From positions 1 to 64,000 of the IMG/VR virus record IMGVR_UViG_3300011934_000017: a stretch of DNA of 64,000 bases. One strand, 5' to 3'. Positions 4,629-18,256 of the stretch are shown here, in pieces. Each line of letters opens with the position of its first letter. Within the stretch, counting starts at the first letter, position 1. Below the pieces are notes generated by a model. That model was not told the origin of the DNA and did no database searches. It saw only the letters and a program-made list of their open reading frames with translations. Position numbers and translations under genes: made by a program.

Positions 4629-4630
4629 GT

Positions 4631-4687: not shown

Positions 4688-6157
4688 ATGTTTTTTGTTT
4701 CTATTGCGGCAAAAGGAATCGATCCTGAGGCATTTGCGTGGCTAGTTTTTACTCGTTCCACGAAGATGCAACTCAAAGGGTACAATCAACGCCACACTCT
4801 AGTTCTGTCTAAGGGTGATATATTTGGTGTCCGCAGAACCCGCTCAAACACCTACCAGATGGTAAAATCTGATTCTCTCCATGTCCTGTATCGCAACGTG
4901 CCTGCCGAAACATACAATCGTATTCTGAAAAATTGCATTGCATACAAAGGCACTCCTATTACGGAAGAAGAGGTAGAAGATGGCTTTAGTAGGAGTCGGC
5001 GAGTCTCTACCACAGAATCCACTCAGAAGTCCAACAAGCGAACGGATGACTTTTATAAACCGGGTTCTCGCATAATTGAGAAGTACCAGATTGATCAGAA
5101 TAACTATCAGTGGCGCAAGCTGCGAGAAGCTAATATCAAAGTGCTGTCTAAGAAACAAGGCAAGATTAAAGGGCTACTTAACTCTGGCGATGTTATAGGT
5201 CTTCGATACTCTACACCTGCACGCGGTGGTTACGTTCTTCTTGACGGAAACAAACGAATCAACATATCTCATGAAATGTACTCCGAACTTGTTCATGCTT
5301 CCCGAGTGCTTCCTGATTCTCAGCAAAAAGATGATGTGGTCGATCTTGGAAGTGGTTTGTCTGATTCTGAAATAAAAGAAAAGATGCAGGAAGAGGCCAA
5401 AGTTGCCAAAGAGCGAAAAGCCAAGAATGCTCCTGCGCCGGTAGAGGAAGAGCCTATCGAAAAGCTGTATGATATAGGTGATCTTTCAGACGACGAGCTT
5501 CTGGAACAAAATACATTCAAAAAAGACAAACGCAATCGTAATCTACGGCGAATGGTAAGAAAGCTGTTGGAAGTACCGGAACAAGATGTTTGGGTAGACG
5601 AAGATGAAGCTAAAGAAAAGGACTTCGAGGATGAAGAGCTGGAAGATGTAGATGCTGAGTCGGAAGCTCCAGAAGAGTCTGAAGACTTTGAAGACGAAGA
5701 GGATAACGACGATGGACTGGACGATAATCTTTCCGATGACCTTCCTGATGATTCTGATAACGACGATTCTGACGGTGAGTTTGAAGACGAGGAAGACCTT
5801 GAAGATGAAGAAGACCCAGAAGAAGCCGAACGCAAAGAAAGTCGAGTAGTTGAAGAGCTGCAACCTGGAAACATTGTTCAAATCAAGAAAGGAACTAAGC
5901 GGAAGCTTGTTGTTATTGACGCTTCTCCTATGGAAAGGAATGAGAATTTAATAGAGTATATCCTGCATGATCCAACAGCCGACGAAGACGACCAAGACTT
6001 TAGCTTATATAGGCTGCGTCTGAACGTTAATACCACTTTTGCTAAGTTCGAAGAAAGTGCGGACCTTTTGGATGAAACATTCGATGACAAACAGTTAAAA
6101 GCAATACAGGACTCTATGGAATATGCTGACATTAAATCTATCTCTTTCGTCAAATAG
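4688..6157 (+). CDS. Hypothetical (likely virion) protein with beta-barrel-like segments and a long acidic linker
   Basis: Start moved to ATG 4688 (RBS aggagg); long D/E tract. Confidence 0.75.
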   Translation: MFFVSIAAKGIDPEAFAWLVFTRSTKMQLKGYNQRHTLVLSKGDIFGVRRTRSNTYQMVKSDSLHVLYRNVPAETYNRILKNCIAYKGTPITEEEVEDGFSRSRRVSTTESTQKSNKRTDDFYKPGSRIIEKYQIDQNNYQWRKLREANIKVLSKKQGKIKGLLNSGDVIGLRYSTPARGGYVLLDGNKRINISHEMYSELVHASRVLPDSQQKDDVVDLGSGLSDSEIKEKMQEEAKVAKERKAKNAPAPVEEEPIEKLYDIGDLSDDELLEQNTFKKDKRNRNLRRMVRKLLEVPEQDVWVDEDEAKEKDFEDEELEDVDAESEAPEESEDFEDEEDNDDGLDDNLSDDLPDDSDNDDSDGEFEDEEDLEDEEDPEEAERKESRVVEELQPGNIVQIKKGTKRKLVVIDASPMERNENLIEYILHDPTADEDDQDFSLYRLRLNVNTTFAKFEESADLLDETFDDKQLKAIQDSMEYADIKSISFVK

Positions 6158-15326: not shown

Positions 15327-15357
15327 CAATCTACTCTAAACAAAGAGTAGTTGTTTT
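15327..15357 (+). promoter_or_regulatory. Hairpin upstream of the MCP (attenuator or mRNA-stabilising stem)
   Basis: caatctactct-aaacaa-agagtagttg followed by tttt. Confidence 0.45.
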
Positions 15358-15380
15358 CTGACATAACGGAGATATTATCC

Positions 15381-16481
15381 ATGACAAGTCCGTACAAAGG
15401 CGCCAAGATGGTATTGGCCAACGGAAACCCGATCGAAGACATTCGTTTTGGCAACTCTAACCAACGCGCTCTCGACGGTAAAACTGGTGAGTTTAACGCT
15501 AACGACAAAGGCGAATTGACCCGCGCAATTTCACAGCTAATGGAAGCCGCAGCTTCTGGCCAAATCGTTGAATCCAACGAAGCGACCATGTCTGCTTCTG
15601 AAGAACGTGAAATGCGTCGTGAAGTTCTGGCCTCTGCTCTTAACGATGCTTCCGGTCAAGAATGGGCAGCACTGGGCTCCGGCCTTGCTCGCCAGATCAG
15701 TGAAGAAACTTCGCGTCAAGGCTTCCTGCGTCGTATCTCGCAAGGCCAAACGCTGCGCCAGGGTGAAGTACCGCGTGTTCCGATGCCCGCACACGACAGC
15801 ATTGCAATCGTCGCTACTTCAGCTTCCTCTGTCGGCTACCAGACTATTCGCCAGCGCGTATTTACTCCTGACGAATTTGAAATTCAGTCCAACGTTCGTG
15901 TTGAAAACCTGGATATCGAGCAAGTTAACGGTGACCTACTTGAGCACGCCTATAACGACGGCCTGCAAGCAGTAATGGTTGCTGAAGATAAGCTCTGGAA
16001 AAATGCTGCCGATAAGACTGTCGGTGTCGTGAACGACCTGGAATACATCGCTGGTGAACTGACTACCCGTAACCTGGGTAATCTGCGTCAAGCTGTAGCA
16101 CGTTGGAACCTGCCGGTTAACACTGCCATTATCAGTAACGACTACTGGGCAGATATCATTGGTAGCCAAGACTTCGCTACATTCCTGGATCCGATCACCA
16201 AGTATGATCTTGCTCTGAACGGTCAGATCGGTACTCTGGTTGGTATGCAACTGTTGACTGATGCTTTCCGTCAGCCGAACCAGAAAGTTCTGGGCGCTGG
16301 TGAAATCTACGTTGTTGCCAGCCCTGAGAACCACGCTGCTTACTCTACTCGTGGTGGCATTCGTTCTACTCCGACTTCTGGCGCCAACTCTGGTAACAGC
16401 ACACGCGGCTGGTTCCTGACGGAGCCGTTCAGTTTTGTTTTGGCTAACAGCCGTTCTGTTGCTAAAGGCAAGCGGGTATAA
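15381..16481 (+). CDS. Major capsid protein
   Basis: Start moved to ATG 15381 (RBS ggag); HK97-like size and features (RQGFLRR, TPDEFEI, GQIGTLVGMQLLTDAFR); strong codon bias; position after the scaffold. Confidence 0.85.
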   Translation: MTSPYKGAKMVLANGNPIEDIRFGNSNQRALDGKTGEFNANDKGELTRAISQLMEAAASGQIVESNEATMSASEEREMRREVLASALNDASGQEWAALGSGLARQISEETSRQGFLRRISQGQTLRQGEVPRVPMPAHDSIAIVATSASSVGYQTIRQRVFTPDEFEIQSNVRVENLDIEQVNGDLLEHAYNDGLQAVMVAEDKLWKNAADKTVGVVNDLEYIAGELTTRNLGNLRQAVARWNLPVNTAIISNDYWADIIGSQDFATFLDPITKYDLALNGQIGTLVGMQLLTDAFRQPNQKVLGAGEIYVVASPENHAAYSTRGGIRSTPTSGANSGNSTRGWFLTEPFSFVLANSRSVAKGKRV

Positions 16482-16510
16482 CGCTCCTAACCAAATAGGT
16501 GTTGCAGTGT

Positions 16511-16612
16511 AAAGAGTAAAACGATTCTGTAGAGACAAGGCCGGCCAGCCCTGTTAGTGCCCCTAGCGCTGACTAACCTACAGAGTCGTTCTTTTGTTCT
16601 AGGGGAACTCAC
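16511..16612 (+). ncRNA. Structured RNA leader with a possible loop-RBS kissing interaction
   Basis: 13-bp stem aacgattctgtag/ctacagagtcgtt enclosing a gttagt/actaac hairpin whose loop (cccctag) complements ctagggg at the RBS. Confidence 0.5.
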
Positions 16613-17656
16613 ATGCGAAGCGATTTTTATGTCTATGCACTCCTCGATCCGAGGAAACCCGGTAAGTATCGTTACGGTAAACTAAAGCTTGATTACGAAC
16701 CGTTCTACGTTGGTAAAGGCTGTAAGAAACGAAGCCACTCCCACACTTCGTCTATTAAGAAATCTATTGTTAGAGGAGTTTTAAAGCATTCCTATAATAA
16801 ATGGAAAGAAGGTAAGATTAGAAAGATTTTAGAATCTGGTGAAACTCCTATTGTGCGAATAATTAAGCGGAATCAGATCGAGTCCGAAGCTTTTAGACTA
16901 GAGACTAAAGCAATCCGTCTCATAGGCCGTAAAGGCAAAGGTCCTCTTACTAATCTTACAGACGGCGGTGAAGGTACTTCTGGTAGAATTGCCTCCAAAG
17001 AGACAAGAAGCAAACATACGGCTAATAACATTAAAATGTGGGCTGATTTATCCGAGGCCGATTATATCGCTAGATGTTTGTCTATTTCAAAAGGACATTC
17101 GCGTAGAACGCCTGAAGAACGTGAGGCTCTTCGCGCAAGGTACCGAGAGATTCAAACGAACCTGCCTGAAGAGATAGCGACCAAACGTAGTAAGCGTATT
17201 CGTAAAGCACTTAGAAAATACCGTAAGAGTATGACCGAAGAACAACGTTTAGCCGAATCCGCAACACTGTCTCGCGTCCAGAAAGCAATACGCGCACGGG
17301 AAACGGATGAAGCTAAAGTTGCCAGAAGCGCCGCTATCAAACGCGGATATGCTTCAAAGGATCGAAAGCAGATAGAGCAAAAGAACAGCAAAATAGCTGC
17401 CAAGATTCGCCAACAACACGCAACGGCTTCAGAGTATGATAAGCGTATGCGAAGCTTTAGTGTAATGGTAGGTGTTATGCTTAGGAACTACACGGATAAA
17501 GGCTTGATAGAACAGTCTAATGTTGATCAGATTAAACAACGCCTGCGTAGTTCCGCACAAAAGTTTTATTCTGCTGAATGTAATTTAACTCGCAAGCCCA
17601 ATGTTCTCCGTGAGAAAGCAAGGGTTGTTATTTTACAGTATGGAAGTGCAGCGTAG
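16613..17656 (+). mobile_element. Free-standing GIY-YIG (COG3680/LEM-3-like) homing endonuclease
   Basis: YVYALLDPR...PFYVGKG..R...H, E..LE...I, LTNLTDGGEGTSG, then basic helical repeats; inserted between the MCP and the next head gene. Confidence 0.8.
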
Positions 17657-17658
17657 CC

Positions 17659-17800
17659 ATAAATATCGCTTTGCACGTTGAGTTATTCCCTGAACAGGAG
17701 AAACTTTATGACCTGTTAATACTTAGATTTATGATAGCCTACACTCGCTTACTGTCACGCCCGGGAGTCTAGCAGTGTAGGCATTAGGGGGTTATGCCAC
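17659..17800 (+). promoter_or_regulatory. TAAATA motif plus structured leader for the gene at 17801
   Basis: ataaatat at 17659; aacagg/cctgtt, gcctacact/agtgtaggc and ggcat/atgcc stems. Confidence 0.45.
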
Positions 17801-18256
17801 ATGAACAAAGCGCGTGATTTGCTCGCACTGGCTATCGAATCTTTCCGAAGTGGAGAGTACGATGCTGCGGCCAAATTTTTCGCCTCTGCTGTTGGCTCTG
17901 AAGACCTTGATAGTTTCGTTAGCGATATCACGAAGAACGTACCTCGCTCTGCTCTGACTGGTCCAGTTCCCTTTGGGGAAAACACACTCAATCCTTCTCT
18001 TGCATCTGGTTCAGACTTAGATGATATTGTAGAACGGGTAGAAGCGCGATTCCGTGCTGAATGTGCTTTACTGGACGACGATGAATCGGAAACCGAGCTA
18101 CGTGCTTCTGAAGATGACGATGAGGTCTACGAGGACGATGAAGAGGACAATCTTCTTGATGAAGAAGATTATGAAGAGGATGATGATGGTGTTATTGAAT
18201 CCTCTTCTGCTCGAAAATTTAAGTCCGTAGTCGGCCCTGTGCGACTCAAGAACTAA
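17801..18256 (+). CDS. Acidic head-associated protein
   Basis: RBS aggggg; helical N-terminus, D/E tract, AS-type motifs like those in the scaffold. Confidence 0.7.
   Translation: MNKARDLLALAIESFRSGEYDAAAKFFASAVGSEDLDSFVSDITKNVPRSALTGPVPFGENTLNPSLASGSDLDDIVERVEARFRAECALLDDDESETELRASEDDDEVYEDDEEDNLLDEEDYEEDDDGVIESSSARKFKSVVGPVRLKN

Follow-up and report, generated by a model that had tools for sequence, protein, structure and literature searches.

A conserved three-stem leader RNA with a predicted pseudoknot at the ribosome-binding site of selfish nuclease genes in phages

A conserved and apparently undescribed three-stem RNA is found in front of selfish nuclease genes in many phages, and in 22 of 24 copies one of its hairpin loops is an exact complement of 6–9 nt of the Shine-Dalgarno (SD) region of the gene behind it. 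The copy with which this analysis started lies at positions 16520–16590 of the window, the stretch of 64,000 nucleotides that was analysed (positions 1 to 64,000 of IMG/VR virus record IMGVR_UViG_3300011934_000017, from a stromatolite metagenome), between the gene for the major capsid protein (MCP) and the gene for a GIY-YIG homing endonuclease. The most likely function of this RNA is translational attenuation by a loop-SD pseudoknot, a function that is inferred from the anatomy of the RNA in the absence of expression or probing data: in a single search of DNA and RNA runs together, the sequence was found only in two stromatolite DNA runs.

In the window, the RNA (all features are on the plus strand) folds into a three-way junction (3WJ). 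Stem P1 consists of 13 bp, including one G.U pair, and joins 16520–16532 (AACGAUUCUGUAG) to 16578–16590 (CUACAGAGUCGUU). It encloses junction J1/2 (AGACAA, 16533–16538; family consensus GA(A/C)AA), hairpin hp1 (16539–16550) with a GGC/GCC stem (16539–16541 with 16548–16550) and the hexaloop CGGCCA, hairpin hp2 (16553–16573), and junction J3/1 (UAAC, 16574–16577; family consensus UA, UAC/UAG, UAAC or UUAC). P1 is followed by a pyrimidine-rich, G-poor linker (CUUUUGUU, 16591–16598) and by CUAGGGG (16599–16605), which covers the Shine-Dalgarno purines and ends 7 nt before the AUG at 16613. The sequence CCCCUAG in hp2 (16560–16566) is its exact complement. RNAfold reproduces the three-way junction as both the minimum free energy (MFE) and the centroid structure, with an energy of −35.4 kcal/mol for 16511–16612 (z = −3.0, 1 of 200 shuffles as good) and z = −2.75 for 16482–16630. 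A sequence-only reading of the same region had proposed a multi-stem RNA with a hairpin loop that contacts the endonuclease ribosome-binding site (RBS), and these elements are confirmed. However, that reading had paired gttagt with actaac (16553–16558 with 16572–16577) in the second hairpin, which is off by a few pairs, as homologues support the register GUUAGUGC/GCGCUGAC (16553–16560 with 16566–16573, loop CCCUA), followed by the unpaired UAAC. The 7-nt anti-SD therefore spans the apical loop plus its closing pair.

By our estimate, a single 7-mer match at this position would arise by chance at roughly the 1% level, and it is the comparative data that make the case decisive. Searches with two covariance models found about 25 distinct copies of the RNA in viral contigs (individual loci are designated here by L numbers), one metagenome contig and Erwinia phage pEa_SNUABM_22. 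All three stems covary: 91.8% of cells in the alignment are paired, against 55.6% in shuffled alignments and at most 44.4% when the partners are slid, 215 cells change on both sides against 60.6, and the covariation score is 0.794 against 0.177, values that were reached in 0 of 500 shuffles. All 14 P1 pairs and all 8 hp2 pairs show changes on both sides. The alignment used for these counts was fitted to the model and leans towards it, although the slide control agrees with the counts, as do the independent folds, in which each copy forms the 3WJ on its own. In contrast to P1 and hp2, whose sequences are fully scrambled, hp1 is the near-invariant core of the family. Its loop is CGGCCA in 22 of 25 copies, while its stem covaries (GGC/GCC, GCGC/GCGC, AGC/GCU, AGAGC/GCUUU, AAGC/GCUU).

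The pairing between the hp2 loop and the SD region is conserved although the sequences differ completely between copies. The exact complement between a loop and its own SD region averages 6.58 nt, and 22 of 24 copies reach 6 or more, whereas swapped partners average 3.78 nt and only 4.9% of them reach 6. The observed sum is 158, compared to a maximum of 119 in 100,000 permutations. Examples are CCCCUAG/CUAGGGG in the window, CUCGUAU/AUACGAG in Erwinia phage pEa_SNUABM_22, CCUAUCA/UGAUAGG in L215, CCUGCAU/AUGCAGG in L050, and AUAUUGC/GCAAUAU in L344. Linkers of 4–15 nt, almost free of G, are seen in all copies, and the stretch that pairs with the loop ends 6–14 nt (mode 8) before the start codon and covers the first purines of the SD. 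In the window, the duplex of the hp2 top and loop with this stretch is predicted at −16.0 kcal/mol, against −2.9 kcal/mol for the local gttc/gaac hairpin (16596–16599 with 16605–16608). The latter is not conserved and leaves the SD core in its loop with an unpaired probability of about 0.8 in the leader alone, that is, free to be taken by the hp2 loop. These stabilities are rough because ViennaRNA cannot score pseudoknots. Furthermore, in the window, L004 and L006 the top one or two pairs of hp2 must open for full loop-SD pairing, and in many copies the pseudoknot covers only the 5′ half of the SD (for example, GUGUGG|AG), so repression may be partial.

Searches for a described relative of this RNA gave nothing. 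A scan against all 4227 Rfam 15 families found no match at E up to 10 in 16300–16800, none at gathering score in the whole window (for the motif) and none on the motif in 7 other loci at E up to 1. Full-text literature searches, including the core sequence as a string, and a term search of a survey of 224 motifs (PMC5737381) found no description. The Rfam phage motifs, such as Mu-gpT-DE, include structured RNA next to a phage major head gene, but the link of the present RNA to the capsid gene is due to the insertion site and not to the RNA. A near-identity search of GenBank phages found no match for the MCP-endonuclease region, and blastn with the short core found only pEa_SNUABM_22 as a true copy, the other hits being chance matches in coding regions. 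Of one set of hits, only L117 (the same contig as L006) and L126 pass the model and the rest is GC-rich chance. Loci L309 and L225 were rejected as GC-rich or weak hits. The 12 weak model hits are mostly coding sequence (the string encodes E-K-A-G-Q-P) and none has the 3WJ or the pseudoknot; no cellular copy was found in these searches.

The gene behind the RNA in the window (16613–17656) encodes a free-standing GIY-YIG homing endonuclease of 347 aa (Pfam PF22945, LEM-3-like GIY-YIG, E 7.3e-10), in which the motif residues Y6 V7 Y8 ... Y32 G34 are invariant in 5 homologues. It is the only copy of this homing endonuclease gene (HEG) in the 220-kb genome, and the RNA likewise occurs only once in that genome, at this gene. 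Homologues sit at the same site in L004, L006, L007, L017 and L216. Genes behind other copies of the RNA are of the GIY-YIG, HNH, DUF7487/DUF723-type “homing endonuclease” and ParB-like families. Only about 9 of the 80 GIY-YIG loci examined carry the motif, so it is not required for HEG control.

The leader, the ORF and a 3′ arm form a cassette of about 1.26 kb (16482–17745, with an approximate 3′ boundary at 17720–17745) that is inserted after the MCP gene (15351–16481, stop codon TAA at 16479–16481). The MCP was identified by a match to phrog_2522 (major head protein, E 5.5e-104) and is 62–67% identical at the amino acid level to the MCPs of Pseudomonas phages PaBG, HRDY3 and Lu11. These three phages lack the cassette and have only 76–106 nt between the MCP gene and the next gene, which corresponds to 17801–18256 (151 aa) in the window and follows the MCP gene directly in HEG-less relatives. 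In a blastn comparison with the HEG-less relative L005, homology ends at the MCP stop and resumes at position 17746 of the window. L006, which has the HEG, and L005 are 95.9% identical through the MCP gene, and 1281 nt in L006 replace 91 nt in L005. Among the phage records, which include other Erwinia phages with this type of MCP, a 71-nt leader query matched only pEa_SNUABM_22.

The position of the RNA, 38 nt after the MCP stop, the CUUUUGUU tract behind P1, and the long hairpin that relatives also carry after the MCP gene could suggest a terminator or 3′-end stabiliser of the MCP gene, with an incidental match to the RBS. This is very unlikely. No terminator was called in 16482–16612, the base of P1 is AU-rich, and the linkers are mixed C/U rather than U tracts, with no U-rich linker in L050 and L126. 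The ancestral post-MCP hairpin is a different element (GCCUACACU ... AGUGUAGGC, 17737–17782) with the conserved loop CGCUUACUGUCACGCCCGGGAGU, which is homologous to the MCP-downstream hairpin of L005, lies downstream of the insertion and is not part of the cassette. The leader is absent from HEG-less relatives, copies occur away from capsid genes, and the loop-SD match recurs across the family. The link to the abundant MCP transcript, which the sequence-only reading had proposed, is incidental.

A candidate phage promoter, TGTAAAGA, is found at 16508–16515, 4 nt before P1. It is a one-mismatch variant of TGTAAATA, an intergenic motif that occurs 34 times in the 220-kb genome (about 7 expected), with 22 copies in the 14% of the genome without long ORFs. 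Similar TGTAAA(T/G)A strings precede P1 in L004, L006, L215, L216, L367 and L332, and in L126 and L342 a TATAAT-like site precedes the whole motif. RBS sequestration is the documented way in which T4-type phages restrain I-TevI, I-TevII, I-TevIII, segB and Aeh1 mobE (PMC2988022); there, as here, a selfish nuclease gene is embedded in a phage transcription unit, its SD is base-paired in the mRNA so that little protein is made (an inference in the present case), and there are several layers of control. However, those structures are idiosyncratic local hairpins with the SD inside the stem, relieved by a late promoter placed inside the hairpin. Here, a conserved three-way junction is shared by unrelated nuclease families, the SD pairs with the loop of a distal hairpin 33 nt upstream, and the only promoter-like site lies upstream of the whole structure.

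In the clade of the window (the window, L004, L006 and L017) we identified a second layer, which the sequence-only reading had missed. The linker, SD, AUG and codons 1–8 (16590–16638), extended by 16505–16517 on the other side of the 3WJ, can pair with 17651–17715, which encompasses the last two codons, the stop and about 60 nt downstream and includes a second anti-SD, UUCCCUGAA. The resulting interrupted duplex of about 50–60 bp (about −55 kcal/mol) loops out the ORF with the 3WJ as a side branch. RNAduplex gives −54.8 to −56.6 kcal/mol, against −23 to −26 ± 3 for shuffles, and the duplex is present in the global MFE of 16482–17800. In the full-cassette ensemble, most SD positions and the U and G of the AUG have unpaired probability at or near 0. 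Compensatory changes in L004, L006 and L017 include a UAG-to-UAA stop change matched by C-to-U in codon 7. This duplex is not a family trait, as z is −7.5 to −12.5 in the four clade members and about 0 in 14 other copies.

The inverted repeats at the cassette ends, together with the palindromic GGCCGGCC or GCCGGC, might be taken for a feature of the DNA, such as a protein operator on the GGCCGGCC palindrome, a transposon-like terminal inverted repeat or the endonuclease target. This is highly unlikely because G.U pairs are tolerated on the sense strand only: there are 26 G.U against 10 A.C among the non-Watson-Crick cells of the 3WJ, and 6–10 G.U per long duplex, with the antisense strand 10–17 kcal/mol weaker. 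The hp1 stem also includes G.U variants (L216, L332), the loop pairs with a translation signal, and four nuclease families would not share one DNA target. Likewise, there is no evidence for a guide RNA, which the sequence-only reading had allowed, as the loop matches its own mRNA and not a DNA target.

These observations are best explained, with fairly good confidence, by a cis-acting leader RNA that travels with free-standing homing endonuclease genes in phages. In the inferred mechanism, the 3WJ folds first and, as soon as the SD region is transcribed, the pre-formed hp2 loop captures it in a 6–7 bp pseudoknot, so that 30S binding is inefficient and the nuclease is made only at a low level, whichever promoter supplies the transcript. 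In the clade of the window, the long-range duplex would form once the whole ORF is transcribed and would shut off initiation completely. With 46–49 pairs (−51 to −57 kcal/mol), it is also long enough to be an RNase III substrate, which would cut the cassette out of the MCP late transcript. It may resemble the long-range RNase III processing stems of rRNA operons, T7 early mRNA sites and lambda sib retroregulation, in that sequences on both sides of a roughly 1-kb unit pair into a long duplex and an element downstream of the gene controls it, but this duplex also contains the SD and the AUG and can repress without any cleavage.

That the family as a whole is an RNA-processing element, either a self-cleaving ribozyme (also among the possibilities raised by the sequence-only reading) or a site for RNase III or RNase E, with SD pairing being secondary, appears unlikely. 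P1 stacked on hp2 would give about 21 bp of helix, the clade-specific duplex is a plausible RNase III substrate, and the GIR1 lariat-capping ribozyme in front of I-DirI may be a precedent for an HEG-linked ribozyme. Nevertheless, we found no evidence for a ribozyme: no Rfam ribozyme model matches, there are few invariant nucleotides, and, by eye, the defining core sequences of hammerhead, pistol and tRNA-like RNAs are absent. The strongest covariation signal, loop to SD, has no role in cleavage, and in L126 and L342 the motif directly follows the TATAAT-like site, with a divergent or absent upstream gene, so there is nothing to be detached from.

A plain attenuator does not explain why the hp1 hexaloop and the junction are nearly invariant, a pattern that is more typical of a binding site. 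A conditional switch, either a riboswitch or the binding site of a protein or other trans factor, therefore remains a tentative alternative, in which occupancy of the junction and hexaloop would stabilise or release the pseudoknot, so that the nuclease is made only at a particular time or in a particular cell state. As in riboswitch aptamers, stems of free sequence surround about 15 nearly invariant unpaired or loop nucleotides (GA(A/C)AA, CGGCCA, CU, UA), and the expression platform overlaps the SD. The same core sits in front of four unrelated nuclease families in phages with 38–66% GC across the motif, which a shared trans partner fits better than gene-specific autoregulation. However, no alternative (anti-pseudoknot) structure was found to be conserved, the regulated genes are selfish nucleases and not metabolic or transport genes, so no ligand suggests itself, and the hexaloop is replaced in L017 (UGGCCC), L265 (UUAGCG), L004b (ACCGUA) and L272 (9-nt loop) while the rest of the motif and the pseudoknot persist, so the loop sequence is not strictly required. 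Translational riboswitches such as SAM-II, preQ1-II/III and SAM/SAH (PMC7367207, PMC9373788) also combine a conserved core and covarying stems with a pseudoknot helix that takes in the SD, but in the present case there is no Rfam match and membership is not established. The protein-controlled mRNA pseudoknots of rpsO/S15, the alpha-operon/S4 and T4 gene 32 (PMC3985624, PMC7038950) similarly limit or trap 30S binding at the translation initiation region, but they regulate the gene of the protein that binds them. Here, four unrelated nuclease families follow the same RNA, so autoregulation by the product is unlikely. More speculatively, and with a low probability, the motif could be a new class of sensor RNA dedicated to selfish nuclease genes of phages, through which homing endonucleases of four unrelated families would read the same cellular signal, for example the replication or co-infection state, before cutting DNA.

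Homing endonucleases are known to be restrained by mRNA structure, but only through one-off hairpins in T4-type phages. Here, one portable RNA module of about 80 nt, with an addressable loop that is re-tuned to the ribosome-binding site of each gene, precedes GIY-YIG, HNH, DUF7487-type and ParB-like genes in many unrelated phage contigs. It provides a recognisable signature for annotating selfish nuclease cassettes and their boundaries in phage genomes and, with one cultured carrier (Erwinia phage pEa_SNUABM_22), offers a directly testable system for how phages tolerate toxic mobile genes inside their most highly expressed operons. It is a natural example of a programmable loop-SD pseudoknot regulator and, if the invariant core binds a factor, it would be a new riboswitch-like class.

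All elements proposed for the MCP-endonuclease junction in the sequence-only reading were confirmed in the sequence. The P1 stem joins 16520-16532 to 16578-16590 (13 bp with one G.U), the ggc/gcc hairpin (hp1) spans 16539-16550, a second hairpin (hp2) lies within 16553-16577, and CCCCTAG at 16560-16566 is the exact complement of CTAGGGG at 16599-16605, which ends 7 nt before the ATG at 16613. RNAfold returned this three-way junction (3WJ) as both the MFE and the centroid structure, with z = -3.0 for 16511-16612 and z = -2.75 for 16482-16630. A consensus scan called no terminator between the MCP stop codon (16479-16481) and the start codon, and Rfam 15 had no match, even at E up to 10.

The window represents the first 64 kb of a 220,237-bp viral record with direct terminal repeats, whose sequence is present in two stromatolite metagenome runs. 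Its MCP (15351-16481) is 62-67% identical to those of the jumbo Pseudomonas phages PaBG, HRDY3 and Lu11. In those phages the MCP gene is followed, after 76-106 nt holding one long hairpin, by the homologue of the window gene at 17801-18256. The window instead carries a gene for a 347-aa GIY-YIG endonuclease (16613-17656; PF22945), which is the only copy in the genome. The HEG-less relative L005 loses homology to the window exactly at the MCP stop and regains it at 17746. L005 and the HEG-bearing L006 are 95.9% identical through the MCP gene, yet 1281 nt in L006 replace 91 nt in L005. The ancestral post-MCP hairpin is therefore window 17737-17782, and the structure noted in the sequence-only reading belongs to the inserted cassette, not to the capsid gene. 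The ancestral hairpin (window 17737-17782; L005 about 1180-1225; loci L001 5125-5170, L002 5152-5185 and L003 5113-5153) has a covarying stem and a conserved loop, CACGCCCGGGAG in the window and L005 and GGAGCGCCCC in PaBG, Lu11, HRDY3 and several contigs; it is not a canonical terminator.

The motif TGTAAATA occurs 34 times in the 220-kb genome (about 7 expected), including window positions 4630, 22605, 32100, 34536 and 38209, and TGTAAAGA is found at 16508 and 45049. Of the 34 copies of TGTAAATA, 22 lie in the 14% of the genome not covered by long ORFs, often 40-70 nt before a start codon. It looks like the promoter of this phage and is close to the T4 late TATAAATA, which itself is not enriched here (8 copies, none intergenic).

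Four viral contigs (L004, L006, L007 and L017) carry the same GIY-YIG gene after their MCP gene, and all of them have the same fold in front of it, with different stem sequences. In L004, a second copy of the 3WJ (5379-5469; 72.6 bits) lies downstream of the HEG; its hp1 is changed (AAGC/ACCGUA/GCUU), its hp2 loop is long, and no ORF or SD complement follows. It may be the relic of an earlier cassette. A covariance model built from four copies and rebuilt from 25 recovered further copies from loci found through the conserved core string, from loci of GIY-YIG relatives, from whole viral records, and from the GenBank Erwinia phage pEa_SNUABM_22 (locus L216), where the motif lies between gp143 (major head protein) and gp142 (GIY-YIG). 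About 25 distinct copies resulted. In their alignment, 91.8% of cells form standard pairs, against 55.6% in shuffles and at most 44.4% when partners are slid by 1-3 columns; 215 cells carry changes on both sides, against 60.6; and the covariation score is 0.794 against 0.177. None of 500 shuffles reached any of these values. All 14 pairs of P1 and all 8 pairs of hp2 show double changes. Although the alignment was fitted to the model, every copy also folds into the junction on its own. Among non-Watson-Crick cells, G.U outnumbers A.C by 26 to 10, which points to the sense-strand RNA.

The key idea of the sequence-only reading, a contact between a hairpin loop and the endonuclease RBS, holds. 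For 24 copies with a downstream ORF, we took the top of hp2, as defined by the model columns, and looked for the longest exact Watson-Crick complement in the 50 nt after P1. A copy's own partner gave 6.58 nt on average, with 22 of 24 copies reaching 6 or more, whereas swapped partners gave 3.78 nt, with 4.9% reaching 6. The observed sum is 158, and the highest of 100,000 permutations is 119. The sequences are unrelated between copies, for example, CCCCUAG/CUAGGGG in the window, CUCGUAU/AUACGAG in L216, and, in other loci carrying the motif, CCUAUCA/UGAUAGG (L215), CCUGCAU/AUGCAGG (L050), CUCACU/AGUGAG (L126), CCAGUAA/UUACUGG (L264), AUAUUGC/GCAAUAU (L344) and CUAGUAC/GUACUAG (L348). The paired stretch ends 6-14 nt (mode 8) before the AUG and usually takes in the first two purines of the SD (for example GUGUGG|AG). 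The linker from P1 is 4-15 nt long, pyrimidine-rich and almost free of G.

From 5' to 3', the consensus consists of P1 (6-14 bp of free sequence), GA(A/C)AA, hp1 (3-5 bp, GC-rich and covarying, as in GGC/GCC, GCGC/GCGC, AGC/GCU and AGAGC/GCUUU) with the hexaloop CGGCCA in 22 of 25 copies, CU, hp2 (5-8 bp of free sequence with a 4-7 nt loop), UA(N), and the P1 3' strand. Homologues place hp2 of the window in the register GUUAGUGC/GCGCUGAC, followed by an unpaired UAAC, which is also the MFE, and not in the gttagt/actaac register originally proposed. In the window, L004 and L006, full loop-SD pairing therefore needs the top one or two pairs of hp2 to open, while most other copies have a 6-7 nt loop that is complementary throughout. 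The copies were collected partly through the conserved core string, which biases the apparent invariance of hp1 upward; indeed, copies found through proteins (L264, L222, L272, L265, L007 and L017) show more hp1 variation. Simple SD capture does not explain the near-invariance of hp1 and the junction, and a ligand- or factor-responsive switch accordingly remains possible, although we consider it unlikely.

The ORFs behind the motif fall into four classes: GIY-YIG (PF22945; 14 loci); HNH (L126, PF01844, and L344, I-HmuI-like); zinc-ribbon/DUF723/DUF4379/DUF7487 proteins that PHROGs label homing endonuclease (L215, L319, L367 and two in L332); and ParB-like proteins (L050 and L302). Eight viral contigs (L302, L304, L310, L322, L323, L347, L349 and L368) carry an identical short-P1 copy (5 bp) in front of a ParB-like gene, and here the loop-SD match is interrupted by one bulged U (CUGCAC against GUGC-U-AG). 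One 259.6-kb phage genome (G002) carries two copies, 8.5 kb apart, in front of two different nuclease families, DUF7487-type (L215, 99698-99777) and GIY-YIG (L007, 108254-108331), and their hp1 stems differ (GCGC/GCGC against GC/GC). Two copies (L317 12369-12485 and L342 2329-2385) keep the motif and a 7-8 nt loop-SD match but the ORF behind them is cut to 39 aa (a GIY-YIG N-terminus) or 19 aa; these are probably decaying endonuclease genes. In locus L222, a complete group I intron core (950-1239; Rfam RF00028, 83.8 bits) lies about 150 nt upstream of the 3WJ (1396-1469) and its GIY-YIG gene; the leader and HEG of that phage may sit in, or next to, an intron. Only about 9 of the 80 GIY-YIG loci fetched carry the motif. 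In the 80 bacterial stretches examined (of at least 120 core-string hits), the 12 weak model hits are mostly coding sequence and none has the structure. In L126 and L342 a TATAAT-like site directly precedes P1, and in L126 the upstream gene is divergent, so there the motif is a 5' leader with no upstream cistron.

A second layer, which was missed in the sequence-only reading, is found in the clade formed by the window, L004, L006 and L017. In these sequences the linker, SD, AUG and first eight codons pair with the last two codons, the stop codon and about 45-60 nt beyond. RNAduplex gave -51 to -57 kcal/mol, against -21 to -26 +/- 3 for shuffles (z = -7.5 to -12.5), whereas fourteen other copies gave z of about 0. 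The sense duplex has 46-49 pairs, including 6-10 G.U, and is 10-17 kcal/mol more stable than the antisense. Changes are compensated: AAG/CUU becomes AAA/UUU, UUU/AAA becomes UUC/GAA, GUC becomes GUU where the stop changes from UAG to UAA, and the spacer AACUCAC/GUUGAGUU becomes AACAGCCAC/GUUGGCUGUU. The global MFE of 16482-17800 keeps the 3WJ as a branch on this helix, which extends to 16505-16517 paired with 17703-17715, that is, to the ends of the cassette. Most SD positions and the U and G of the AUG then have unpaired probabilities at or near 0, whereas in the leader alone the SD core is about 0.8 unpaired. In HEG-less relatives, as seen by eye only, an anti-SD directly after the MCP stop (AUCUCC; AACUCC in L021) is complementary to the SD of the next gene (GGAGAU; GGAGUU) across the hairpin (L002 5137-5142 with 5201-5206; L003 5106-5111 with 5169-5174; also L010, L012, L013 and L021). 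The window keeps CUCCUAA and UUAGGGG (16484-16490 with 17784-17790), now 1.3 kb apart, and the long-range duplex of the cassette would bring them together.

The data thus show a conserved 3WJ with a covarying loop-SD pseudoknot that is exclusively associated with selfish nuclease genes and is transferred with the cassette. No Rfam family describing this motif was found, nor was any paper in the literature searched, although that coverage was incomplete and prior description elsewhere cannot be excluded. Readings of the element as a terminator, as a ribozyme or processing element, or as a DNA-level feature are weaker. In the absence of expression, probing or RNA-end data for any carrier, its function is inferred. 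We infer that the junction folds first and that its hp2 loop then captures the SD as it emerges (about -16 kcal/mol for the extended contact, against -2.9 for the local hairpin, although pseudoknot energetics could not be modelled). This would lower 30S binding and keep the nuclease scarce on any transcript that contains the leader, including read-through from the capsid gene. In the clade of the window, the completed transcript is inferred to close the long duplex, which would block initiation altogether, and the duplex is a plausible RNase III substrate that would excise the cassette RNA from the late operon. SD-sequestering leaders of homing endonuclease genes are already known, and the inferred mechanism matches the logic documented for T4-type endonucleases (RBS sequestration, terminators, processing; PMC2988022), but the architecture is different and shared.
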